Part shown: piece by piece, positions 28,988-43,229 of the stretch | How positions within the stretch are numbered: position 1 is the stretch's first letter | Layout: the number at the start of each line of letters is the position of its first letter | Assembly (NCBI RefSeq): GCF_947568905.1 | Contig: NC_079172.1 | Location: 31,930,001-31,994,000, forward strand | Length of the DNA: 64,000 nt | From: Ostrea edulis | Taxonomy: Eukaryota | Direction of reading: 5' to 3' | The notes under the pieces: model-generated | The model's input: only the letters and a program-made list of their open reading frames with translations | The model's database searches: none | Told to the model about the DNA's origin: nothing | Position numbers and translations under genes: made by a program

Positions 28988-29152
28988 TCAGCTGCGATGG
29001 AGGTGAAAATTCGCTGTATTTTCTGCGGCGGTGATGCAGACAACTTTCTGTGGGTGCTGCGTCTCGGACTGTAAATACTGGTTTAGATCCACCCCGAGCT
29101 TGTGTAGTTCACTATAATGATGCAGTAGCTGTTTTTGATCCTCTTTCGTCGC
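28988..29152 (-). CDS. MVP-like gene exon 13 (terminal)
   Basis: TTTTTGTCAG| ATKEDQKQLL...KLGVDLNQYL...FHLHRS*. Confidence 0.87.
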   Translation of the reverse strand, partial: ATKEDQKQLLHHYSELHKLGVDLNQYLQSETQHPQKVVCITAAENTANFHLHRS

Positions 29153-32100
29153 CTGACAAAAATAAGACCGCCAATTAATGTTACAAGCATACGCCTGTTG
29201 GTTCTAGGTTTTGTATTCCATGCTTTGCAATGAAATTCAATCCTCAAAAAATAAATCCTTCAGAAACAGAAATGCTAAGTTTAAAGGCTCAAATCTAACA
29301 TACACAAAACCTACAGCACAAATTTTGTTTATAAAGCATTGGACAGATTCTGGTGTGATAGATTAGTCATGTTTTGATGATGCATTCAGCTATCCTTCAC
29401 ATACCAACTTCTTCATCATCGAGTTAGGATTATTAAAAATGTTGTGTGAAAGGTGAGAATAACAAACAGTGATCAATCTCATGACTCCTATAAACAATAC
29501 AAAATAGAGAGTTGGGCAAAAATGGACCCCTAGATATACCAGAGGTGGGATCAGGTGCCTAGGAGGAGTAAGCATCCCCTGCTGACCGGTCACACCCGCC
29601 ATGAGCCCTATATCTTGATCAGATAAACAGAGTTATCCGTAGTCAAAATCAGTGTGCCAAGAACGGCCTAACAATTGGTATGAAACACGTCAGACAGCAT
29701 TTGATCCAGTGATAGGTTGTATTGGTGAACTAGATCGTTATAACGACCATAGAATTTGCGACATGCTGACTTTAAACAAGTGTAATTTCTACAATGATGA
29801 CAAATTAGGATCATCGTTTTCCCCATATCACACAAAATTGGCCATTTGCAGATTCTTCCTTTATGACTACAAAATTATGCTTGTCCGTTGACCCGGTTTA
29901 CCTCAAGAGAAGCCATATTTTCCTCTGTCCAGCGGTCTCGCTTTTTCTCCTCTTCTTGTACATTCAGAGCCAGTTTGTGTTGCACTGCTGCCCTGTAAGA
30001 ATACACGTACATATACACCATACATGTTTTAGCATGCACTGTAAGCCAGGCTTGAACTGGCAAATGCCAACATGTTCATGAGAATTGACAGTGTTGTGTT
30101 TACACCTTGTATACAAACAACATCTCAGCAAAGCATGGGCTCTCATATTCTCGTCTCCTTGCTGCAGTTAGGTTCTGTACTTATTTCATTTGTTCTGTTT
30201 GTTAATAATCAGTCAAGAACCTCACTTATTTCATTTGTGTTCTTTTTCTTAAAGCAAATACTTTTTTTGATCAGAAAGATGTACTCATTTAATGATGATT
30301 AGGTCAAGGATAAATTTTAGAACACTCAGAAAAAATCTGGCCAGTCCAGAATCTGCAATATGAGAACAGGCTAATTCAATGTATTGGAAATCCATTATTT
30401 TGTTTGGTTGAAATTGGGCGACTGTTGGTCACTGAGAATACTATCTAATTTTATAAAATTCCCAGTATCCAGACTTTATATAAAACAACATTTTCTTAGT
30501 AGCAAACTTATGCTGTTTCAATACATCTTATTTTTCCACAAGCACTGACTGACATTTCAACTTGGCATAAAAAGCTGTAAGTTCACAGAATTTGAATTTA
30601 AGGAATAGATTTTGAAGTTGTTTGTATATTTTCAATGTGGGATATAAAGACAAATAAAAGAATCGAGTAATTTTCCCATAATCAGCTCAGGGACCATCAT
30701 TTCACAATTTCCAAGAACTAGGTCAATGACTCTTTAAAATTTCCATAACTGCAAAAGTCTAGTTTTGCAGGACATATTTTGTGATCAACACAGATTTTCA
30801 CACTGATGAACACAACTTCAGAATGCATTGTGTTTGCGATAACCTTTTGATCTGTGTTTACCTCTTCGTAAATCATACCTCTACGACTCTCAATGTTAAC
30901 ACCTGGATACATTAATTATATCTCATCTCAAGATACTGCTTGATACATCATTATAATTGTTTCAGCAATGATTTGTGAGATTTACATAAAAGTACAAGGT
31001 GACATAGCTAATTAAAACAGAAATTGAAAGATTCAGGTAATATATTATGTGTGATGTCACAGCAAATACATATTATGATAATGTTGTCATTAAAAACTCA
31101 CACTAACAGTATACAGATATTGACTAGGTTCAAGGACAACAGCTATTTTGTTTGAGGGTTCAAAAACCAGTTGTTGTCTGAGGACACAGTCTATAAATCT
31201 TTTGTTATACACCTTCACTCTCTTTAGATTGTTATTTTTTCCCCCTAGATGCACATAGTTTGTTGACTTTAAACTTTTAACATACATTTATCACTGTTAC
31301 CACTAGTTTAAAAGAAAACATACCCAACACATTATCAATATTTCTTAATATTTATATATTGTTTGCGTTTCTGCTCTGTGTTTCATCTAATAAATTCTGT
31401 ATTTCATCATCAGCTAAATCAGTGAACCTCGCCATTACATACACAAAGCAGCAGATCAAGAATCATGTGACTTGCATAGCCAATAGAAATAGGGAAGACT
31501 GTTGCCTGGTCAACAGTTTGCAAACTGTTGATAGGTCAATAGACCATGAGTGTGAGAGTTGGTTTAACAATTTAAAAGTTGGTTCTAAATTGTATTAGTT
31601 TTATATAGGAAAAAAGTAAGGTGTATAACAACATAAATTATTTTATGTGTAAAGCACAAATTGTTCTATGTGTAAAACACACATTAACAGCACAAATGAA
31701 ACTTACTTTTCCATGTTCTGATTGTGGGTTAAACTTTCTATTTCCATTGTTTGTTCTATAAACAAGAAAAGGAAAATTTAATAACAAAGTCCTCTTAATC
31801 AGTGTTCATTCATACATAATAAATATTCAGGAGAGTACAAGTAGTTATTTTCACTAAATTGAAGACTTTTCGTTGTCTTGAACCAGTCACTTAGTGATCA
31901 ACATAGGCATCCATGAATGAATGCAAAAGATCTAATCAGTCTTCTTACCATTGTGTATGCAAAAATAGAGTAGATGAAAATAAAAACATATCAAACTTAC
32001 TTAGGAATTCATGTAATGTAATTTAGAGCCCTAATGTCATTGTGCGGTGATATGATCAATCCAAAAAAACAGTGCATTAGAAACATTGTGATAAATTACC

Positions 32101-33002
32101 AAGTTTGAGACGATCCCTGTCATTTTTCAGCTTGAGATCAGTCATGTCTTGTTGTTGTTCTTCCTTTTCATACTGAAATGAAAGTAATTCAGGTTTATAA
32201 TATACTGAAATGAAAGTAATTCAGGTTTATAATATACTGGAATGAAAGTAATTCAGATTTGTAATACCCTGAAATGAAAGTAATTCAGATTTGTAATGAA
32301 AGGAAGCAAAAGTGAGCAAGCCCACATACCCCACGCTCCACACATTGCTTGACAATGCCTCACATAATGAATGGTAATGCTATGCATTACTGCAAGAACA
32401 GGACAGACGTGCTTGAAATTCTAAGTTCAAAAGGGGCGTAACTCCCAGAAACAATTATCGAATCAGAATTTTCTGTGAATATGCACATCTACACAGTGTG
32501 TCCTTATTAAGGAGGTATGCTACACCAGAGAAATTTGATGTAGATGAAAAGTGGAGGATATGTACAACAATATTTTGAAGTTGAAATTTTTCAAATCAAC
32601 TTTATTTTGTCAAAAAATACCGTTTTAGTATAAGGTAATCTGAAAAAAATTTAAAAGCCCTGCTGGACTTGAACCTGCGACCTACAGTTTAGCAGTCGGT
32701 ATGCTATTAAACCTACTGAGCTACTCGGCTAGGTATTTAAATTGAAAAGGAAAAGTCAAATATTGCTCCTATTGATTTTTTCCTCCATGTTTTTAAAGGA
32801 CGTCATCCATTATGACGATGTAGAGTACCTCCTTAACTACAAAGTTTGACGAAATTCTGTTGAGCAGTGTCAGAGCAGTTGTGCTGACAAGAACAGGACA
32901 GACAGACTCAAAATTCTAAGTTAAAAAAAAAGCATAACTTCCAGAAAAATTATTGAATCAGAATTCCCTGGGAATATGCACATCTACACACTGTGTCCTT
33001 AT

Positions 33003-33033
<31 letters not shown>

Positions 33034-36000
33034 AAGTCTTAGAGGAATTGCGCTGTCTTAGAGGAATTGCGCTGACAAGAAAGGGACTGACAGACTGACG
33101 AATGGGTCAAAAACATTATACCCTCCGCAACCTCATGGCGTGGGATATAATAATTGTAATACACTGAAATGAAAATAATTCATATAAATTTTGTAATAAT
33201 TGTAATACACTGAAATGAAAATAATTAAGATTTGTAACAATTGTAATATACTGAAATGAAAGTAATTCTGATTTGTAATAATTGTAACTTACTGAAATTT
33301 TGTAATAATTATAAACATGCACAGAAACAGGATCTATGACACACAGGTCACATTCAAGCTGAGAATCTGGGATGTTCTTGGCCCCATGGCCCCTCTTGGG
33401 TTTTATAACATTTAAACAGAGTTTGATGATGCATTAGGGTTGAACTAAATAGTTAAAAATGAAATTATTCAAACAACAAGGCTGCATATACATGTACATC
33501 TAATTCTATGAATGCTACTTCTTGTCAGTCTCTTACTCTGTATATGTATGTTCTCAGTCAGTTTAAATTGACAGAGGGTTTTTCAGTGAGGACAATGTCT
33601 ACAAATATACATTATCCAGAATATACACAGACAATTGATACTTACAGCCAGTTTGAGCTTGGTATGGGTCTGAATTGATACTTACAGCCAGTTTGAGCTT
33701 GGTTCAGGTCTGAATTGATACTTACAGCCAGTTTGAGCTTGGTTCAGGTCTGAATTGATACTTACAGCCAGTTTGAGCTTGGTATGGGTCTGAATTGATA
33801 CTTACAGCCAGTTTAAGCTTGGTTCAGGTCTGAATTGATACTTACAGCCAACTTGAGCTTGTTATGGGTCTGAATTGATACTTACAGCCAGTTTGAGCTT
33901 GGTTCAGGTCTGAATTGATACTTACAGCCAGTTTGAGCTTGGTTCAGGTCTAAATTGATACTTACAGCCAGTTTGAGCTTGGTTCAGGTCTGAATTGATA
34001 CTTACAGCCAACATGAGCTTGGTATGGGTCTGAATTGATACTTACAGCCAGTTTGAGCTTGGTATGGGTCTGAATTGATACTTACAGCCAGTTTGAGCTT
34101 GGTTCAGGTCTGAATTGATACTTACAGCCAGTTTGAGCTTGGTATGGGTCTGAATTGATACTTACAGCCAGTTTAAGCTTGGTTCAGGTCTGAATTGATA
34201 CTTACAGCCAACTTGAGCTTGTTATGGGTCTGAATTGATACTTACAGCCAGTTTGAGCTTGGTTCAGGTCTGAATTGATACTTACAGCCAGTTTGAGCTT
34301 GGTTCAGGTCTAAATTGATACTTACAGCCAGTTTGAGCTTGGTTCAGGTCTGAATTGATACTTACAGCCAACATGAGCTTGGTATGGGTCTGAATTGATA
34401 CTTACAGCCAGTTTGAGCTTGGTATGGGTCTGAATTGATACTTACAGCCAACTTGAGCTTGGTATGGGTCTGAATTGATACTTACAGCCAGTCTGAGCTT
34501 GGTTCAGGTCTGAATTGATACTTACAGCCAGTTTGAGCTTGGTTCGGGTCTGAATTGATACTTACAGCCAACATGAGCTTGGTATGGGTCTGAATTGATA
34601 CTTACAGCCAGTTTGAGCTTGGTTCGGGTCTGAATTGATGCATCATGAATGCGCTGGAGCTCAGGATGTGCGTGATAACCACGATACACCATTTTGGAGA
34701 TCTCATACCCAATCTTCTTGCTGCGCTCCATGAGTTGGGGGTAATTAGCAAGATCATTGAGTTCTGATGATTTCTCCATAAACTCAATATAGCTGTAAAT
34801 CAAAATGGAATTAAACTGAGAAAACTTACACAGGGTAACTTTATTTTTCAATGTGTGGGGTAGGCAGATGGAAAATGAATGACATGAATAAGACCCTTCA
34901 GTTTAGTATTTCAGCATCAGCATTCTTTGATAATGTTATCTTACAGTGAAAATCTACTAAAGAATTTCTAATCAAAGGACTTTCAATTTATGAGAATAAC
35001 ATTTGACAACTTTTGGATTTACCTGTATTTGGCAGCAAAAGCGACCACATCAGCACACACGCAGCTGAAAAAGAAAGTTACACATCGTTACTATACAATC
35101 ATATGTTTAATTGGCATGGTGTTAAAGTTATTCGATTTACTACTTTCACTCATAAAACACAATGTCAAATTATTCAAAGAAGTTGGGTGCATTGCTTCAG
35201 GATATACATGCAGGTCAACAAAATAGTGATTAAGAATTGCCGTGTTATGATTATTGTGAATTATTTTTTTGTTGATTGATTGATTACTGTTTTCCACCAC
35301 ACTCAACAAGTTTTTTTTCTTTTTTCCATGCTTTATTTTTAGACATTTACAATTACATCTACATATGATAGATGATCTCGCACACAAAATCACATACATG
35401 CATACAATATCTTCCATACAAAAACTTTCTACATGAACTAGTATTTGACAGCTTGGCATAATTTAAAGGTATTGAAAATATACCTATTAACAAAATGATA
35501 CTAAAAGTAATGATAACAAATATAACCTATAAAGCTTTGGTTTTTCATCACTTGTTATAAACAATATCATATATTGACCATTTAGTAAATATTTTGGATT
35601 TGCATCCAAACACATTTTCACAGTATTTTTCCATTTTTCTGTAGTACTTAAATAAATTCACTGCCTCAGAAAATTTTGGCCTGATTCCTTGTGATCTGGA
35701 ATAATATATGAACTATTTTGATACTAATAAAAGAAAATTTTCTAAACAGCTTCCTTCTGTATTACCAAGTAAGATGTTTGTTGATTGATTGATTACTGTT
35801 TTCCACCACACTCAACAAGTTTTTAGTAATCTGGTGGCACCCAGTTTTTATTGGTGGAAGAGAGAACCAAGATACAATGAACCTGGGAAGAGACTACCAA
35901 CCTCCCACAAGTAAACTGGGATAATTTTGCACTTACTGGCATGAGCGGGATTTGAACCTGCACTGAACAGAGGTGAGAAGCCATGTGATATTGAGCGCGA

Positions 36001-39000
36001 TGCTCTAACCACTCAGCTACGGATTCCCCCCCCCCCCCCCCCTTCCTTTTGTTGTTGTTGTGAGAACTTTTTTTTAATTTTTGTGAGAACTTTATTTTGC
36101 TATAAGAATTGCCGTTTATATCATGAATTATTTTTTTCATTGTGAGAAATTTATTTTGCTATAAGAATTGTCATGCTATAATTATTAGAATTATTTTTTC
36201 GTTGTGAGAACCTTATTTTGCTGTAAGGATTGTCATGTTATAATTATTACAATTATTTTTTCGTTGTGAGAAATTTATTTTGCTTTAAGGATTGTCGTGT
36301 TATAATTATTACAATTATTTTTTCGTTGTGAGAAATTTATTTTGCTTTAAGGATTGTCGTGTTATAATTATTACAATTATTTTTTCGTTGTGAGAAATTT
36401 ATTTTGCTTTAAGGATTGTCGTGTTATAATTATTACAATTATTTTTTCGTTGTGAGAAATTTATTTTGCTTTAAGGATTGTCGTGTTGTAATCATTAGAA
36501 TTATTTTTTCGTTGTGAGAACTTTATTTTGCTGTAAGGATTGTCGTGTTATAATTATTACAATTATTTTTTCGTTGTGAGAAATTTATTTTGCTTTAAGG
36601 ATTGTCGTGTTGTAATCATTAGAATTATTTTTTCGTTGTGAGAACTTTATTTTGCTATATTAGGATTGCTGTGTTATGATTATTGTGAATCACGTTTTCA
36701 CGACAAGAACTTTATTTTCACGTAAATTTGAACTATCACCTTGATGCAAAATTGTGAATAATATGTTATACATGGGCATACATGTACTGCACAAATCAAA
36801 GTTCTTGAAAATTAAAATACAAATCACAGAAATAAATCTCAGTGATTTATGGTAAAATACAAAATCCCAGAAATAAAGTCTCAGTGATTTACCGTAAAAT
36901 ACAAAATTCCAGAAATAAATCTCAGTGATTTATGGTAAAAAACAAAATTCCAGAAATCTGAAGTGATTTACAGCATTGAGATAATGGTCGAGGCATGAAA
37001 GATTTGGAGATTTTCAGCAAACTTTGATAATCCCATTCAGTTAGAATTTTAATACACTGAAAAAACATCAATGATTATTATAACAGATTTTCTATAATAT
37101 ACATTACCAAATAAGGTACAATATTTTGCCATGTCATCTTCAAATTTTTATTTAATGTAGATTTCCAGAGGAAAGTCTTGGGATTTTTAGCATAAAAGTG
37201 TAAACCGATATAGAGTATGCTCTTTCTGACTCCCAATTACTTTAAATGCAGTTAAAAGATTTCAATAATTTTGAAATTTCTCAGAGCTCCTGATACAATG
37301 CACTATACTAAGTATAAAATGTGAGAGAAAAATCCTTCATTATATACTGATGTAAGATAGGGAAATTTGACCTTGGCAACATGATGCGCTGTTTATGAAT
37401 CAACAAAGCCTTGTTTGGATCTGCAAATCTTGTCAACTCAGTACAATTTCTTAATCCCACACTCACTATTGAAGGATTCTATTAATCTTTTTTCAGGCCA
37501 AAACAAAAAATATATGTGTTTCTGATTTCCCGACCCTATCTACGCTTTGCTGCCAACCAAAAATATTTTACTGACGATATACGTAAATAAAAATCCAGAA
37601 TTTTCAAACTGGAGTTTTTTTCGTTTTGTGTTCAAGTTTCTCTGGTTTACATTTTGACTACTATTGATCATCAAAATATTTGAAAAGTATTTGTAATATG
37701 TCTAAAGACCTGTATTCAAAGTGTATCAAAAACTAAGATTTCAAATAAAATGTTTTGATAAAATAAAATGTTTTACCTACCTACCCCACCTAATTTTTGG
37801 GGAGTGAAATCGGAAACACATATTTTATTTTGGCCTTACAGATAAATGTAATTATCAAACCATACTTGATAATGTCTGCTATCGGGTCTTTTGTGGAGTT
37901 CAGCTGAAATAATACATACTTGTTTTAAACATTCAATACAGAACATTTCCTCCTGATTTTTGTATTTCATTTGTATTGTTTCACAATTTCCACCAACAGC
38001 CAACTCACCATCGTCTCGATTTCTTTCAACTCGTAGAACACCATAAGCTTAATTCTGATTGGTGCATCATCTTTAGTCCGCACTTCATCAACCTGCATAA
38101 AATCCATTCATTACATCCTGTAGAATGAAGTCTACTTGCACATCTTTTGTATAAACATACTTACATTAATATATGATGACATGCAAACATTAGTCACATA
38201 GGATTACATCTATCAGGAGCCCCTGTGCATTTTATGGAGGACCTCAGTTTTCTGGCTCAATAATGAACAAAGTCCACAAAAAAGAATGTCATAGTGTTTC
38301 TCATTTCATGGCTGATGAATGGTTAATCTTTATAGTTGTTTCTAACAAGAACTTTGTACTTTTATTTCTTATAAAACTGATTCAGGAGAGAAATAATTCC
38401 AAAAGATCATATCCTATACGTCAGAGTAGAAGTTGAATCTGCTCAAAAACTGCCACTAATGACACACTGACAAAAACTGCCACCAATGACACACTGACAA
38501 AAACTGCCATCAATGACACACTGACAAAACCAGCCACTAATGACACACTGACAAAAACTGCCACCAATGACACACTGACAAAAACTGCCATCAATGACAC
38601 ACTGACAAAACCAGCCACAGATGACACACTGACAAAAACTGTCACAAATGACACACTGGCAAAAACTGTCACCAATGACACACTGGCAAAGACTGCCATC
38701 AATGACACACTGACAAAAACTGTTACTAATGACACACTGACAAAAACTGTCACCAATGACACACTGACAAAAACTGTCACCAATGACACAATGACAAATA
38801 CTGCCACAAATGAAACAAACTGCCACCAATAGCACACTGACAAAAACTGCCACTAATGACACACTGACAAAAACTGTCACAAATGACACACTGGCAAAAA
38901 CTGTCACCAATGACACACTGGCAAAGACTGCCATCAATGACACACTGACAAAAACTGTTACTAATGACACACTGACAAAAACTGTCACCAATGACACACT

Positions 39001-42000
39001 GACAAAAACTGTCACCAATGACACAATGACAAATACTGCCACAAATGAAACAAACTGCCACCAATAGCACACTGACAAAAACTGCCACTAATGACACACT
39101 GACAAAAACTGCCACCAATGACACACTGACAAAAACTGCCACTAATGGCACACTGACAAAAACATCCACTAATGACACACTGACAAAAACTGCCACCAAT
39201 GAAACAAACTGCCACTAATGGCACACTGACAAAAACTGCCACCAATGACACACTGACAAAAACAGTCACTAATGGCACACTGACAAAAACTGCCACCAAT
39301 GACACAAACAAAAAATGCCACCAATGACACACTAACAAAAACTGCCACACTGACAAAAAATGCCACTAATGACAGACAAAAACTGCCACCAATGGCACAC
39401 TGACAAAAACTGCCACTAATGACACACTGACAAAAACTGCCACCAATGACACACTGACAAAAACTGCCACCAATGGTACACAGACAAAAACTGTCACTGA
39501 TGGAACAATGACAAAAACTGCCACCAATGGCACACTGATAAAAACTGCCGCCACCAATGACACACTGACAAAAACTGCCACCAATGGTACACAGACAAAA
39601 ACTGTCACTGATGGAACAATGACAAAAACTGCCACCAATGGCACACTGATAAAAACTGCCACCAATGGCACACTGACAAAAACTGCCACCAATGGCACAA
39701 TGACAAAAACTGCCACTAGTGGCACACTAACCTGCAAAGTGCGATAAAAGCGAGTCTGTCCAACCTAGTCACAGGCCCAACACCATCCTTAAATTTTCCA
39801 ACCTTAGTCATGATCAGCATTGTTACAGTCAAAATTTCTCAGTTCATGTCACAGATTAAAATGACCATGTATTCACATCCTAACTGAAACACCATAGAGA
39901 CTGGTTACTCATTGACCACACTGAATCACCATAGAAATTGGTCACTCATTGACCACACTGAAACACCATAGAGATTGACCACACTGAAACACCATAGATA
40001 CTGACCACTCATTTACCACACTGAAACAACATAGAGACTGACCACTCTGAAACAAAGACCCCATGTCATGATCAAGCCTTTTCATCAATATCTGAGCCAA
40101 GAAAATAATTGATTTAACAATTTTTGTATTATGAAATTACATTGTAGTAAAACTGGCCCGGACTGATTTGTAACTTCTGGAATAAGTTAGCATTGGGGAT
40201 TAACTGTGTCTTGTTACTCGGATCGGTCCCATGCCAACTGAAGGAATGGAACCTGAAATGGAAAAAGCGATATTTATAAAATATTGGGATTCAATATATC
40301 ATCTGAAAGTTTGTCATACTTTGGGCTATATGGACCAAGGATATCAACCTGGATAGCTCAAGGCTTAGAAAACCTGAATAACACTGCAGGGATCCCAGTT
40401 CAATTCCATGTACAGCCCAAAAATAATACTCTCTTTCCTTCATTTATACGATATCCTATACCGGTGTGTGTGCGTGTGTACATACACACACACACACACA
40501 TTTATTTATATTACCGTTAAACACATCACAAAACAAAGGATTCTACAATGAAGTCCGTTCTCACCATTCGTTGGCTTGTGGCATAACCAGGGTGGGCCCA
40601 AACTGAACGTATCGAGTCACTGCTTTGGTACTTTCGTCCTCTCTGTATATCACCAATGCTTCATTTGCATCTAATGAAATCATGTCCTTAATCTGTATCC
40701 CATAATGCTCTAGGGGATTTGTAAACATCACACATGGTCTGAAACCAAGAAAGTGAATGCATTATAATTGTTAATGTTAAACATACTCTGTTTATGATAA
40801 AAAGTCAGACATACACTACCCACCATAAATAAGCATACACATAACCTTTTTGCACATTTTGGAATTCATGAATTATATTCAATATAATGAAATAAAGATG
40901 AATTCACTGTGTATAACTTTCAATCTCAGTAAAATAAATGGACATTCAATATTTTTGGCATAGTCTGTTGAATTGTGATATTGATTTCTTTAAGGTAAAA
41001 AATCAAAGGATCTTAAATATATAGATCTCCTATTTTAAATATACATTTAACATTAGTCACCCTTTCTTGTGTTCGACTCGCCCATCTTTATATTTCACAA
41101 TGAGGTAGGCATTCTGGTTGGCTGCATTTCGTTTGAGAACTTCATAACGTTCTCGCCACAGAAAGATCTGAAAATTTTTATCAGGATTATAAAATTCTCT
41201 GCTGTTTTATGGACATCGGCTTCATCTGAATTCAACATAGAAAAGAAAGAAAAAGACTAAAACACTCACCCTTTGAGGTCCCTTTTCTACTCTTGCAACT
41301 CCTTCATGATTGTAGACTAAAGCCTGATAAATTATAAGTACACTATTAAGCCACTGCAAAGGTATCTTTTTGAATTAATAGAATCCTTTAATTCATTGTA
41401 CCTTTCATTATAATTTCACATTATGATTTGCATGTCACTTATAGTCATTCATGGGTCAATTCTGTGATTTATTATCCTAATCTTATTTTCTAATTTTCTT
41501 CCAGAGTTAATTATTCTGATTTCATAATTTGGGTCATCTGCAGGTTCTCTCAAAGTCTAAGGGTCTGACAAATCCTCATTTGACTTGATACATAGGGACT
41601 TGTCACATATTTTGTTCATTATATCGACTTAGCCTTGGTGAAGATATGTAGACTCGAAATCTTCTATGTATTGTAAAATTAAAACACCCGAAATAAAAGT
41701 ATTAACAAATACATGATTTACACATTGACAACAAAATGAGAAATAGACATTTAAATAAACACATGGAATAGAAATTAAATAGGTTATAACTGTTTGCAAT
41801 AATTGATCTGTCCCATTCAAGAGCCTAGCAGAGAGTGTCCGATCGGTAAGGTAATGACGGAAATGTGATGTGGGTTAGAACCAGTCATGCATATAATGGT
41901 CAGTCTGTCTATGTCCATGGGCACATAATGCTCGCATACAACACACACTCACTCAGTGCAAAGAAGCTAATACATGTGATTATTTGTATATATAATACTT

Positions 42001-43229
42001 GAACTGGTTATATTGAGATACACGAAAATACTACAAAGGGAGACCACTCAAATACTCCCACCTGCCTCTTTTCCTTGTTTTATGTTTACATGTAAATACT
42101 TATATTTAATCTAATTCATTGATTTATCTCCAATATGAATTTGGGTGTTGACCATCAATACTCAGTAGTCTATTTATCACAAACGAACACACATGTCATA
42201 TCAAAACACAGCGGGTTCAGTTTATAATTCCATATACAGTCAAAGTAATAAACATTTTAATCCAAAGGACTTAATGGAACTGTGCATTTTGCTAAATGAG
42301 CTAAAATAAAGAGTAAACAATTAGTCACAAGGGAAGATGCTTCAATTGCAAATGCTGCAAAATGCAGAGCTAGAAATATTTATTTTTATTCAATTGTCAC
42401 TTGGGCTATCAACATAAATTTTTGCTGATGAATAGGGGGTGAATAGGGAGCTTTTACTGTTCCTTTGGATCAGTCAATATGATAATGACAGGCCCAAATT
42501 CTATGATTGAGTAATAATAGAATACTTTCATAAATAATTTACTAACCCGATTGCTGAGGAATTTTGATAAGTACTCAAATTAACTAGTCCCAAGCTCTTT
42601 ACAAAGAACTAGCCCAAATCCATAATTTACTGGTCCTAAACCATCGGGCCATTAATTATCATGAGCCCAGACAAAGGCCTACCTCACAAATAAGATCATC
42701 TGTAACGTCCCTACACATGCATATATATATGATAGAAACACCCATGCACAAATCAAATTCCTCCCCATTATTACTCTCAATGCTCAAAAGCAATCATTCA
42801 CTTTGGTAAAGAATTTATCAGTTACTCTCTGTAGGGCGTGACACTAACTTAACCAAGGGCTCTGGTACTTCAATGACATCATATGAAAAGGGGTCGACGA
42901 ATCGAGGGAGATCATCCCAAAGTGATCAGACTGGGATTTCGGACCGAGTCCCTTAAGTATCCAGTAAAATGATCTACCAACGGAGTTAACGGTTTGTGGA
43001 GGATCCCGAATTCTGCTGTAAAATATATCATGTCATTCATACAATTGTTTCAAATGCAATGGGGTGGGGATTGTTGTTTCATATAAGGGTATATCTCTGG
43101 CAAAAAGACACTTGACAACAAAGTTAATTCCAAAATTAAACACCTAAATACTTGCGAAAGATTTTTCTACAGGTACCAATCAAAATTTACCTGCTCCCCA
43201 ACATCAAGGGTCACCCAACCGACTGTCAT
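28988..43229 (-). CDS. Miniature major-vault-protein-related SPFH/shoulder-domain protein (13 exons, 404 aa)
   Basis: Exons (5'->3'): 43229-43191, 41323-41270, 41167-41061, 40738-40565, 40252-40141, 38092-38009, 37903-37866, 35064-35023, 34792-34606, 32172-32100, 31755-31707, 29992-29902, 29152-28988. All introns GT-AG, phases consistent, total 1215 nt open. Three GP-containing beta repeats, VDEVRTKDDAPIRIKLMVFY shoulder-like segment, GYEISKMVYRGY, long coiled coil, KLGVDLNQYL. Confidence 0.88.
29440..29783 (-). mobile_element. 3' fragment of a Penelope-like retroelement (intronic)
   Basis: Encodes LKSACRKFYGRYNDLVHQYNLSLDQMLSDVFHTNC*, recalled as the C-terminus of oyster Penelope-like RTs, followed by the same 3' UTR as 27665-28305 with a single 39-bp unit. 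Confidence 0.65.
29902..29992 (-). CDS. MVP-like gene exon 12
   Basis: TTCTTACAG| AAVQHKLALNVQEEEKKRDRWTEENMASLE |GTAAAC. Confidence 0.87.
31707..31755 (-). CDS. MVP-like gene exon 11
   Basis: TTTTCCTTTTCTTGTTTATAG| EQTMEIESLTHNQNMEK |GTAAGT. Confidence 0.82.
32100..32172 (-). CDS. MVP-like gene exon 10
   Basis: CATTTCAG| YEKEEQQQDMTDLKLKNDRDRLKL |GTAATT. Confidence 0.87.
32171..32298 (-). repeat. 32-bp tandem repeat containing the exon-10 splice acceptor (4 copies)
   Basis: Minus-strand unit TATATTATAAACCTGAATTACTTTCATTTCAG; AG at 32173, 32205, 32237 and 32269. Confidence 0.85.
32511..32832 (-). mobile_element. Kolobok-like MITE (TTAA TSD) with tRNA-like segment
   Basis: Inserted into CCTTATTAA|CTACAAAG of a host repeat (the empty site is visible at ~32996-33012); GGAGG/CCTCC termini. 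Confidence 0.75.
33633..34639. repeat. 40-bp minisatellite (25 units) with a duplicated 9-mer higher-order repeat, spanning the exon-9 donor
   Basis: Unit GAATTGATACTTACAGCCAGTTTGAGCTTGGTTCAGGTCT; units 3-11 have the same variant order as units 12-20. Confidence 0.97.
34606..34792 (-). CDS. MVP-like gene exon 9
   Basis: TTTACAG| YIEFMEKSS...RTKLKLA |GTAAGT (first of 25 tandem donors). Confidence 0.9.
35023..35064 (-). CDS. MVP-like gene exon 8
   Basis: CTTTTTCAG| CVCADVVAFAAKYS |GTAAAT. Confidence 0.87.
35822..36027 (-). mobile_element. tRNA-derived SINE (V-domain-like body)
   Basis: A box TAGCTGAGTGGTTAGAGC, B box GGTTCAAATCCC, body ending TTCCACCAATAAAAACTGG. Confidence 0.75.
36060..36700. 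repeat. 62-bp AT-rich minisatellite
   Basis: Unit ~TTTTTTCGTTGTGAGAAATTTATTTTGCTTTAAGGATTGTCGTGTTATAATTATTACAATTA, ~9 copies. Confidence 0.9.
37866..37903 (-). CDS. MVP-like gene exon 7
   Basis: TATTTCAG| LNSTKDPIADIIN |GTATGG. Confidence 0.85.
38009..38092 (-). CDS. MVP-like gene exon 6
   Basis: TTATGCAG| VDEVRTKDDAPIRIKLMVFYELKEIETM |GTGAGT. Confidence 0.9.
38447..39730. repeat. 27-bp minisatellite (intron 5 of the MVP-like gene)
   Basis: Unit AATGACACACTGACAAAAACTGCCACC, ~45 copies, with an internal ~235-bp block duplication. Confidence 0.95.
40141..40252 (-). CDS. MVP-like gene exon 5
   Basis: CATTTCAG| FHSFSWHGTDP...PGQFYYN |GTAATT. Confidence 0.9.
40565..40738 (-). CDS. MVP-like gene exon 4
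   Basis: GGTTTCAG| PCVMFTNP...FGPTLVMPQANEW |GTGAGA. Confidence 0.9.
41061..41167 (-). CDS. MVP-like gene exon 3
   Basis: TTTTCAG| IFLWRERYEVL...EHKKG |GTGACT. Confidence 0.88.
41270..41323 (-). CDS. MVP-like gene exon 2
   Basis: TTTATCAG| ALVYNHEGVARVEKGPQR |GTGAGT. Confidence 0.88.
43191..43229 (-). CDS. MVP-like gene exon 1
   Basis: MTVGWVTLDVGEQ |GTAAAT. Confidence 0.75.

Follow-up and report, generated by a model that had tools for sequence, protein, structure and literature searches.

A spliced oyster gene encodes a predicted short relative of the major vault protein's C-terminal half

A gene of 13 exons lies on the minus strand of a 64,000-nucleotide stretch of Ostrea edulis DNA (RefSeq assembly GCF_947568905.1, contig NC_079172.1, forward-strand positions 31,930,001 to 31,994,000), which is called the window here and is numbered from its first letter. 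The gene runs from position 43229 to position 28988, has a coding sequence of 1215 nt including the stop codon, and specifies a protein of 404 amino acids (aa). Very likely this is a soluble protein that resembles the C-terminal half of MVP, the major vault protein, and represents a conserved family of its own with members of about 400 residues, with an oligomeric state and a role around NAD+ or ADP-ribose suggested by its relatives. The gene was rebuilt from the window sequence by locating the peptides quoted in an initial annotation, enumerating stop-free segments and reading their flanks for splice sites. The peptides are present in the window, the non-contiguous ones crossing exon junctions, and the rebuilding arrived independently at the 13 GT-AG exons, the open 1215-nt frame and the ends that the initial annotation had proposed. 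The plain list of open reading frames (ORFs), which was said to miss the gene, holds only fragments of it, for example 34522–34851, 40561–40731 and 37967–38107, because the gene is spliced.

All 12 introns start with GT and end with AG (11 in cag, one in tag), and their acceptors are preceded by pyrimidine-rich tracts. From intron 1 to intron 12 the donor sequences are gtaaat, gtgagt, gtgact, gtgaga, gtaatt, gtgagt, gtatgg, gtaaat, gtaagt, gtaatt, gtaagt and gtaaac. The exon phases are mutually consistent and the spliced frame is free of in-frame stops. Its product (P0184) is identical in 404 of 404 residues (100%) to the NCBI entry "uncharacterized protein LOC125659917" of Ostrea edulis, and LOC125659917 spans the identical 14,242 bases on chromosome OX387712.1, where the sequence equals that of the window. 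This is an intact, spliced oyster gene that is already predicted in RefSeq, as an uncharacterised protein without a name. In sequencing data of a related oyster, an assembled contig (L086; 1272 nt, intron-free) carries an uninterrupted 1215-nt ORF, collinear and gapless over all 12 junction positions, whose product (P0181) shares 83% aa identity with the O. edulis protein, and uninterrupted ORFs of 1215 nt are also found on assembled contigs of 1.3–2.4 kb from other molluscs. The reading of exon 1 as an internal exon with more repeats upstream, which was considered on account of the cag directly before the ATG, was rejected, since all animal and most bacterial orthologues share the start residue.

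An AlphaFold2 model of the protein, built with an alignment of 111 family sequences (A1), has a mean predicted local distance difference test score (pLDDT) of 89.1, with values below 65 after residue 370. It consists of beta strands up to residue 134, an alpha/beta part at 142–258 that lies in the SPFH domain of about 136–259, a single helix of 109 residues (260–368), a short helix (373–380) and a floppy tail. The beta part comprises three vault-type repeats, at about residues 1–33, 34–72 and 73–122, and these end, as had been noticed in the initial annotation, in the pairs G28-P29, G67-P68 and G114-P115. The three pairs are invariant among the 111 homologues, and comparison of repeat with repeat by hhalign gives P-values from 9e-5 to 8e-3. 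The protein has a mass of 47 kDa and is mildly acidic.

The exons divide this architecture as follows, all on the minus strand and with cag acceptors except where stated. Exon 1 (43191–43229; residues 1–13) opens with the ATG at 43229, a start that the homologues share, and encodes the first strand of repeat 1, the remainder of which, ending in G28-P29, comes from exon 2 (41270–41323; residues 14–31; phase 0). Repeat 2 lies in exon 3 (41061–41167; residues 32–66), where a hidden Markov model (HMM) of the second repeat of the family matches residues 34–72, and it ends in exon 4 (40565–40738; residues 67–124), which also holds repeat 3 and in which the Band_7 and the sub-threshold Vault_3 matches of Pfam begin. 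At the junction between repeats and SPFH domain, exon 5 (40141–40252; residues 125–162) encodes the invariant motif EW.H.F.WHG (H127, F129, W131 and H132 invariant) together with the first SPFH strands. The SPFH domain continues with modelled beta strands at 157–167 and 173–184 and the invariant R167 and D170 in exon 6 (38009–38092; residues 163–190), with a helix bearing the invariant D196 and D200 in exon 7 (37866–37903; residues 191–202), and with the core helix bearing N203 and D208 in exon 8 (35023–35064; residues 203–216). Exon 9 (34606–34792; residues 217–279) supplies the rest of the domain (G245, R254, G255) and the start of the long, cap-helix-like helix (R273). This helix then runs through exon 10 (32100–32172; residues 280–303), exon 11 (31707–31755; residues 304–319; tag acceptor) and exon 12 (29902–29992; residues 320–350) into exon 13 (28988–29152; residues 351–404 and the stop), which also encodes the short helix and the low-confidence tail with the conserved P384 and H400; its TGA ends at 28988. 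Pfam searches with single exons gave no useful match, the pieces being too short.

Several introns of the gene contain tandem repeats. In intron 9, window positions 33633–34639 hold 25 tandem copies of a 40-nt unit made of the last 30 nt of exon 9 and the first 10 nt of the intron; each unit brings its own gtaagt donor, 40 is not a multiple of 3, and read-through frames soon reach stops. At the 3' end of the same intron (32170–32297), a 32-nt unit containing the exon 10 acceptor (tttcatttcag) is repeated in four tandem copies, so intron 9 opens with repeated donors and closes with repeated acceptors. Intron 5 contains a 27-nt minisatellite of about 49 copies (38444–39728) with a strong skew in strand composition, which produces long spurious ORFs on both strands, and intron 7 a 62-nt repeat in about 10 copies (36081–36684).

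When the whole model was compared with the PDB by Foldseek, 12 MVP entries came on top (E 1.8e-14 to 5e-11), followed by flotillin, erlin, stomatin, HflK/C and prohibitin with E-values of 2e-7 or worse. Among the Swiss-Prot models, the top 18 matches were MVPs, from human to Leishmania, with about residues 3–382 of the query aligned to about 271–776 of MVP. Alignment by VIA gave Z-scores of 13.7–16.5 for MVP and covered up to 371 residues (370 at Z 16.5), model positions 3–387 lying on MVP 321–777, a span which by the domain boundaries of the rat protein takes in repeats 7 to 9 (R7–R9), the shoulder and the cap helix. The initial annotation had lined the protein up with the last repeat, the shoulder and the cap helix of MVP; the shoulder and the cap helix stand, while the match to the repeats is wider than the last one alone and takes in R7–R9. 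For prohibitin, erlin, HflK/C, flotillin and stomatin the Z-scores are 10.8–12.4, as in the SPFH domain of stomatin (4fvg; Z 12.3, 1.9 Å over 109 residues), and the alignments begin only at model residue 85. Residues 1–84 are covered by MVP alone among the VIA matches.

The N-terminal part gives the same answer when it is taken by itself. Residues 1–138 folded separately reach a pLDDT of 92.7, and this model matches 16 MVP entries in Foldseek (E 2e-4 to 4e-2, probability 1.0, template modelling (TM) scores of 0.52–0.63), including crystal structures of the isolated R1–R7 fragment, which lacks the shoulder. The first match after these entries has an E-value of 0.54 and a probability of 0.09, and no other fold exceeds a probability of 0.5. 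VIA places the 138 residues on three consecutive MVP repeats in several registers (2.6–3.9 Å over 124–137 of 138 residues, Z 7.9–9.6), and the best match outside MVP spans just 42 residues. Confident matches among the AlphaFold DB clusters go to members of the family, to many clusters of MVP and to a small number of Band 7 proteins. Matches to flotillin or stomatin alone, with no vault repeats in the first 130 aa, had been envisaged in the initial annotation as the contrary outcome; what was found is MVP ranked first by both Foldseek and VIA and matched by the N-terminal part. Because MVP is the best match for the whole model and the sole match for the N-terminal 138 aa, the predicted architecture is three vault repeats, an SPFH shoulder and a cap helix of 109 residues, without a membrane anchor.

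Single vault-type repeats of the model (3–42 and 43–86) can also be laid on the N-terminal beta part of the SPFH domains of prohibitin, erlin, stomatin and HflK/C, over about 40 residues with 1.3–2.2 Å and Z-scores of 4–5.5. These weak scores hint, as a lead, that vault repeats may derive from duplication of the N-terminal beta subdomain of SPFH.

The protein belongs to a family that is widespread among non-vertebrate animals and among bacteria, those of the PVC group and others. A search with the 62 aa of exon 9 among 1.84 billion representative proteins returned 369 relatives, many of them 400–450 aa long and matched at the position that the query has in the oyster protein, and the complete protein aligns end to end with about 110 proteins of 385–440 aa at 35–85% identity. 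Identity is 83–85% to other oysters, with orthologues of exactly 404 aa and 85% identity in Crassostrea and Saccostrea, and, along some 400 residues, 36–64% to the remaining animals and to bacteria. With the Haliotis orthologue as query, proteins of about 404 aa were found in bivalves, gastropods, a chiton, a nemertean, annelids, three sponge classes, crinoids, a hemichordate, rotifers and bacterial metagenome-assembled genomes (MAGs). Relatives appear in databases as "uncharacterized protein", as "Band 7 domain-containing protein" (UniProt) or under the spurious name "T2SS protein E N-terminal domain". Across the 111 sequences, 23 columns are invariant, including the three G-P pairs and the EW.H.F.WHG motif; bacteria and animals alike retain this motif and R167, D170, D196, D200, N203, D208, G245, R254, G255 and R273.

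In a scan of one genome per prokaryotic species, relatives with 36–45% identity to the oyster protein were detected in at least 247 bacterial species. Most hosts are Planctomycetota and Verrucomicrobiota, and others belong to Myxococcota, Thermoanaerobaculia, Armatimonadota, Omnitrophota, Sericytochromatia and further groups. A maximum-likelihood tree separates 46 bacterial from 23 eukaryotic rows by one branch, with a Shimodaira–Hasegawa-like approximate likelihood ratio test (SH-aLRT) value of 99, and within the animals it agrees broadly with the species tree: bivalves, gastropods and Spiralia are grouped, and sponges and deuterostomes stand outside. This topology is what a long vertical inheritance in animals, with numerous losses, would leave, together with a single old connection between bacteria and eukaryotes, the direction of which is not readable from an unrooted tree.

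The number of repeats varies within the family. By counting with HMMs of the three repeats (R1, R2, R3), built from the family alignment, three were found in most members (180 proteins), including all animals. Five repeats in the order R1-R2-R3-R2'-R3' were counted in 20 proteins of about 490 aa, including those of Adhaeretor mobilis, other Pirellulales and Phycisphaerae (Planctomycetota), and seven, as R1 plus three R2-R3 modules, in four metagenomic proteins of 628–671 aa. The five- and seven-repeat examples include loci L038, L047, L054, L058 and L071–L073 and proteins P0090, P0206, P0222, P0233, P0256 and P0259. Pfam finds no domain in the extra length of the 490–670-aa relatives, where the repeat HMMs show duplicated R2-R3 modules. 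From these layouts, the wall-forming part grows by duplicating a two-repeat module, giving 3, 5 or 7 repeats. Some bacterial members have an N-terminal fusion to the c-di-GMP-binding domain MshEN (P0094, and the 587-aa Planctomycetota proteins of one atlas cluster), which accounts for the name "T2SS protein E N-terminal domain" that several mollusc orthologues misleadingly bear.

In bacteria, the gene tends to have neighbours concerned with NAD and ADP-ribose. For 80 bacterial loci, ORFs were called, neighbours within four genes were clustered and the clusters were named by Pfam. The calling was crude: the centre ORF was recovered in 61 loci and missed in 19 of the 80, and some neighbours stayed unlabelled (for example NrtR and Macro in locus L035), so the counts that follow are lower bounds. 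Isochorismatase/nicotinamidase genes occur in 33 of the 61 loci (directly upstream in 17), NUDIX genes in 26 (directly downstream in 23), ADP-ribosylglycohydrolase in 26, NrtR in 24, Tpt1/KptA in 20, microbial PARG in 12, NAD synthase in 11, NAPRTase in 7 and NADAR in 5. At least one of these nine families is present in 46 loci and at least two in 36, almost always on the same strand and in several phyla; DUF4291, found in five loci, was left out of this count. Typically, the genes run NAD synthase, NrtR, nicotinamidase, short MVP-like gene, NUDIX, Tpt1 and ADP-ribosylglycohydrolase. In two unrelated MAGs, the short MVP-like gene directly follows NrtR and stands beside Macro, ADP-ribosylglycohydrolase, Tpt1/KptA, NUDIX and DUF4291, with the full NAD-salvage set also present in one of them, and in locus L001 the upstream nicotinamidase-type gene overlaps its start by four bases. 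NrtR is described, in work cited within PMC9503650, as an ADP-ribose-sensing repressor of NAD metabolism.

These observations suggest how the protein might work. In the solved SPFH proteins and in MVP, rings or cages arise by lateral assembly, with the SPFH domain and the long helix as the contact, and the vault closes its two halves via the N-terminal repeat (PMC13100048). Because all solved SPFH proteins and MVP pack in this way, the oyster protein would form a soluble homo-oligomeric ring or a small vault-like cage, its subunits packed side by side via SPFH domain and helix and its wall lengthened by the vault repeats; oligomerisation of this kind is more likely than not, judging from the solved relatives. 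Since the protein is without a membrane anchor, two halves may close through the N-terminal repeat, as in the vault, but a closed double cage is doubtful. In the human MVP cage, NAD+, ADP and ADP-ribose are bound with affinities of tens of micromolar; the site is a basic pocket where adjacent subunits meet, at the junction of R9 and SPFH, which is formed by R437, R507, P508, H509, R511, L517, P565 and K573 and lies close to the catalytic part of PARP4, an enzyme housed in the vault (PMC12280208). As an estimate from domain boundaries rather than residue by residue, the region around 507–517 of MVP, before the shoulder, should match EW.H.F.WHGTDP at residues 124–136 of the oyster protein. Because the bacterial orthologues sit in NrtR-controlled operons for NAD salvage and removal of ADP-ribose, the job of the family may be tied to NAD+ or ADP-ribose, either by binding the nucleotide or by housing or scaffolding enzymes or their ADP-ribosylated substrates. 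For the oyster protein itself such a role is tentative and somewhat less likely than not.

Several results weigh against this interpretation. At the sequence level, no vault repeat model of Pfam exceeds its gathering score on the oyster protein: Vault, Vault_2 and Vault_4 do not match, and Vault_3 reaches 20.4 bits at residues 92–141 (cut-off 28.8, E 5.6e-4). MVP_shoulder does not match either, one relative giving a faint signal (E 0.11), and the region is seen instead as Band_7 (residues 90–254, 25.7 bits against a gathering score of 23.6, E 1.4e-5). Across the family alignment, Band_7 matches 55 of 111 sequences and Vault_3 30 of 111 at E below 0.1, with a best E-value of 3.2e-6. Searches of all PDB sequences with phmmer (the oyster protein) and hmmsearch (the 111-sequence profile) retrieved no MVP or SPFH chain even at an E-value of 10, only coiled-coil noise, and the family profile scores MVP below 15 bits; the link to MVP therefore rests on structure and on sub-threshold Pfam matches. 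In the genomic context, 15 of the 61 bacterial loci have none of the NAD/ADP-ribose neighbours, and the operon evidence as a whole is bacterial, so that it has to be carried over to the oyster from orthologues with about 40% identity.

The same loci bear on the alternative that survives best, which is that the protein does form a cage, with a role in animals unrelated to NAD or ADP-ribose. The operon link would then be specific to bacteria, for example as a scaffold in phage defence, and the animal gene would have been co-opted. Operons centred on ADP-ribosylglycohydrolase (ARG), known from planctomycetes and other bacteria, may according to a published proposal (PMC9503650) serve antiviral de-ADP-ribosylation and include accessory chaperones that vary; the tree splits bacteria and eukaryotes into two clades, and some bacterial members are fused to MshEN instead. 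However, the most conserved columns are invariant across bacteria and animals, as would be expected if they had a molecular activity in common, the eukaryotic vault has an NAD+/PARP link of its own (PMC12280208), and the PADLOC models do not recognise the protein. Co-option of this kind appears somewhat unlikely.

It is improbable that the protein is an ordinary scaffold of membrane microdomains, similar to flotillin, stomatin or prohibitin, whose resemblance to MVP reflects no more than a shared SPFH domain and long helix. Such proteins, among them erlin, HflK/C and QmcA, do share with it the SPFH fold and, after it, a long helix that forms the wall, Band_7 is its sole Pfam family above cut-off and gives its relatives their UniProt name, the SPFH cage proteins match at Z-scores around 12, and their N-terminal beta parts superpose weakly on single repeats. 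Membrane SPFH proteins, however, carry a transmembrane helix, a hairpin or a lipid anchor before the SPFH domain and build half-cages on membranes (PMC13100048), MVP being the one member of the superfamily with no anchor there, whereas in the oyster model this position is filled by beta repeats, with two extra vault repeats in place of the anchor. No hydrophobic anchor, transmembrane or hairpin segment is present in the protein, the maximum Kyte-Doolittle value over 19 residues being 1.44, within a core helix. The alignments of other SPFH proteins leave out everything before residue 85, and their Foldseek scores are at least six orders of magnitude worse than those of MVP, residues 1–138 match MVP entries that include the shoulder-less R1–R7 fragment, and Vault_3 recurs in the family.

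A mis-predicted, pseudogenised or bacterial contaminant locus, which the unusual similarity of the bacterial relatives might bring to mind, is highly improbable given the 12 canonical introns, whose phases agree, a reading frame clear of internal stops, the position of the gene on a chromosome-scale record of 75.6 Mb, the 404-aa orthologues in Crassostrea and Saccostrea, a tree that tracks mollusc and animal relationships, and the uninterrupted ORFs on the contigs of other molluscs.

The function of vaults has been unclear since their discovery. An MVP-like family with the same repeat-shoulder-helix plan in a compact form, present in animals and hundreds of bacterial species and stepping from 3 to 5 to 7 repeats, is, at about 47 kDa and with bacterial hosts in culture (Adhaeretor mobilis, Cerasicoccus, Poriferisphaera), convenient for studying how a vault-type wall is assembled and lengthened. 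Its operon context points to NAD+ and ADP-ribose, the same chemistry as that of PARP4, the only enzymatic passenger of the vault, and of the newly found pocket in human MVP, and the question of what a vault-type cage is for becomes concrete enough for binding, encapsulation and knockout experiments. Mollusc biology gains an uncharacterised, strongly conserved protein that may form a particle. A more far-reaching idea, which is unlikely as it stands, would regard these proteins as "mini-vaults", soluble cages with a wall length set by 3, 5 or 7 repeats and an ancestral function in handling NAD+ or ADP-ribose, either by binding the nucleotide or by enclosing enzymes of de-ADP-ribosylation and NAD salvage or their substrates, of which the eukaryotic vault, with PARP4 and its NAD+ pocket, would be a nine-repeat elaboration. 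In that case oysters, like many other invertebrates, would possess an additional vault-like particle, smaller than the vault and so far unseen.

Neither the gene nor the idea of a short MVP homologue is categorically new, the former being already predicted and the latter having precedents. In the searchable literature, no description was found of the short family itself, of its breadth in bacteria and invertebrates, of the series of 3, 5 and 7 repeats or of the NAD/ADP-ribose operon context; searches for the locus identifiers returned nothing, and NCBIfam and PADLOC contain no model for this family. The known system closest to the bacterial loci is the group of ARG-centred operons regulated by NrtR or WYL, which are proposed to strip virus-made ADP-ribose from host macromolecules (Viruses 2022, Aravind group, PMC9503650). 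Both have ADP-ribosylglycohydrolase, an NrtR-type Nudix regulator, a rhodanese-type phosphatase (in locus L001), Macro and NADAR, and Planctomycetes among their hosts. In contrast, PMC9503650 names chaperone-like accessories and no SPFH- or MVP-like component, and the loci described here add the NAD-salvage genes for nicotinamidase, NAPRTase, NAD synthase and PnuC. No literature combining NrtR with SPFH, band 7 or vault was found.

Other proteins approach the architecture to different degrees. AlphaFold models of vacuolins A–C of Dictyostelium align with the oyster protein over query residues 3–404, the N-terminal part included (E 2e-9 to 1e-8), but with TM-scores of 0.31–0.33, lengths of about 590 aa and N-terminal extensions; the vacuolins, usually called flotillin-like, may thus have repeat-like domains ahead of SPFH. 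Neighbours of the oyster protein in the protein atlas include several clusters dominated by Uroviricota (tailed phages), with 333–871 aa and both MVP_shoulder and Vault_3, as well as families of 460–550 aa with Band_7 and Vault_3 in rotifers, haptophytes, diatoms and Chloroflexota. Given these further short families, the oyster protein is one branch of a wider, poorly charted radiation. An Asgard archaeal MVP homologue with five repeats, a shoulder and a cap helix has been predicted from structure and proposed to form a small closed cup (Nat Microbiol 2026, PMC12962969). It is likewise a shortened protein of the repeats-shoulder-cap helix type known from structure prediction, but from another lineage and with a repeat number other than the three of the oyster protein. 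The same article describes prokaryotic MVP homologues as occurring in "only a few Bacteria", whereas the short family by itself is found in at least 247 bacterial species representatives, and in another recent paper the MVP domains are still called unique to the vault (2026, PMC13100048).

With MVP (PDB 4V60, 9BW5, 9Z4W), the oyster protein shares an anchor-free order of tandem beta repeats, SPFH shoulder and very long cap helix. No other structure matches the whole protein as well as MVP does, and none but MVP matches its N-terminal repeats; both have a link to NAD or ADP-ribose, MVP through PARP4 and the NAD+ pocket and the short family through its bacterial operon neighbours. They differ in size, with 3 repeats and 404 aa in the oyster protein against 9 repeats and about 850–890 aa in MVP, and in sequence, identity in the structural alignments being 15–17%. 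The helix of 109 residues is shorter than the cap helix of MVP, which reportedly has 155 residues in the rat vault. The vault partners TEP1, vault RNA and PARP4 and the 78-mer are features of MVP, whereas the oyster protein is known here from its gene and its predicted fold. Bivalves also appear to have a canonical MVP, as mentions of the major vault protein in the full text of proteomic articles on mussels and Dreissena suggest, and the short form would then be an addition and not a replacement. The oyster protein, with three repeats and no Pfam vault or shoulder model at threshold, is not a canonical MVP; as the initial annotation had supposed of a separate, shortened MVP/SPFH lineage, it represents a distinct, conserved family within the SPFH superfamily, one that shares the special features of MVP, namely repeats ahead of the SPFH domain and no membrane anchor.

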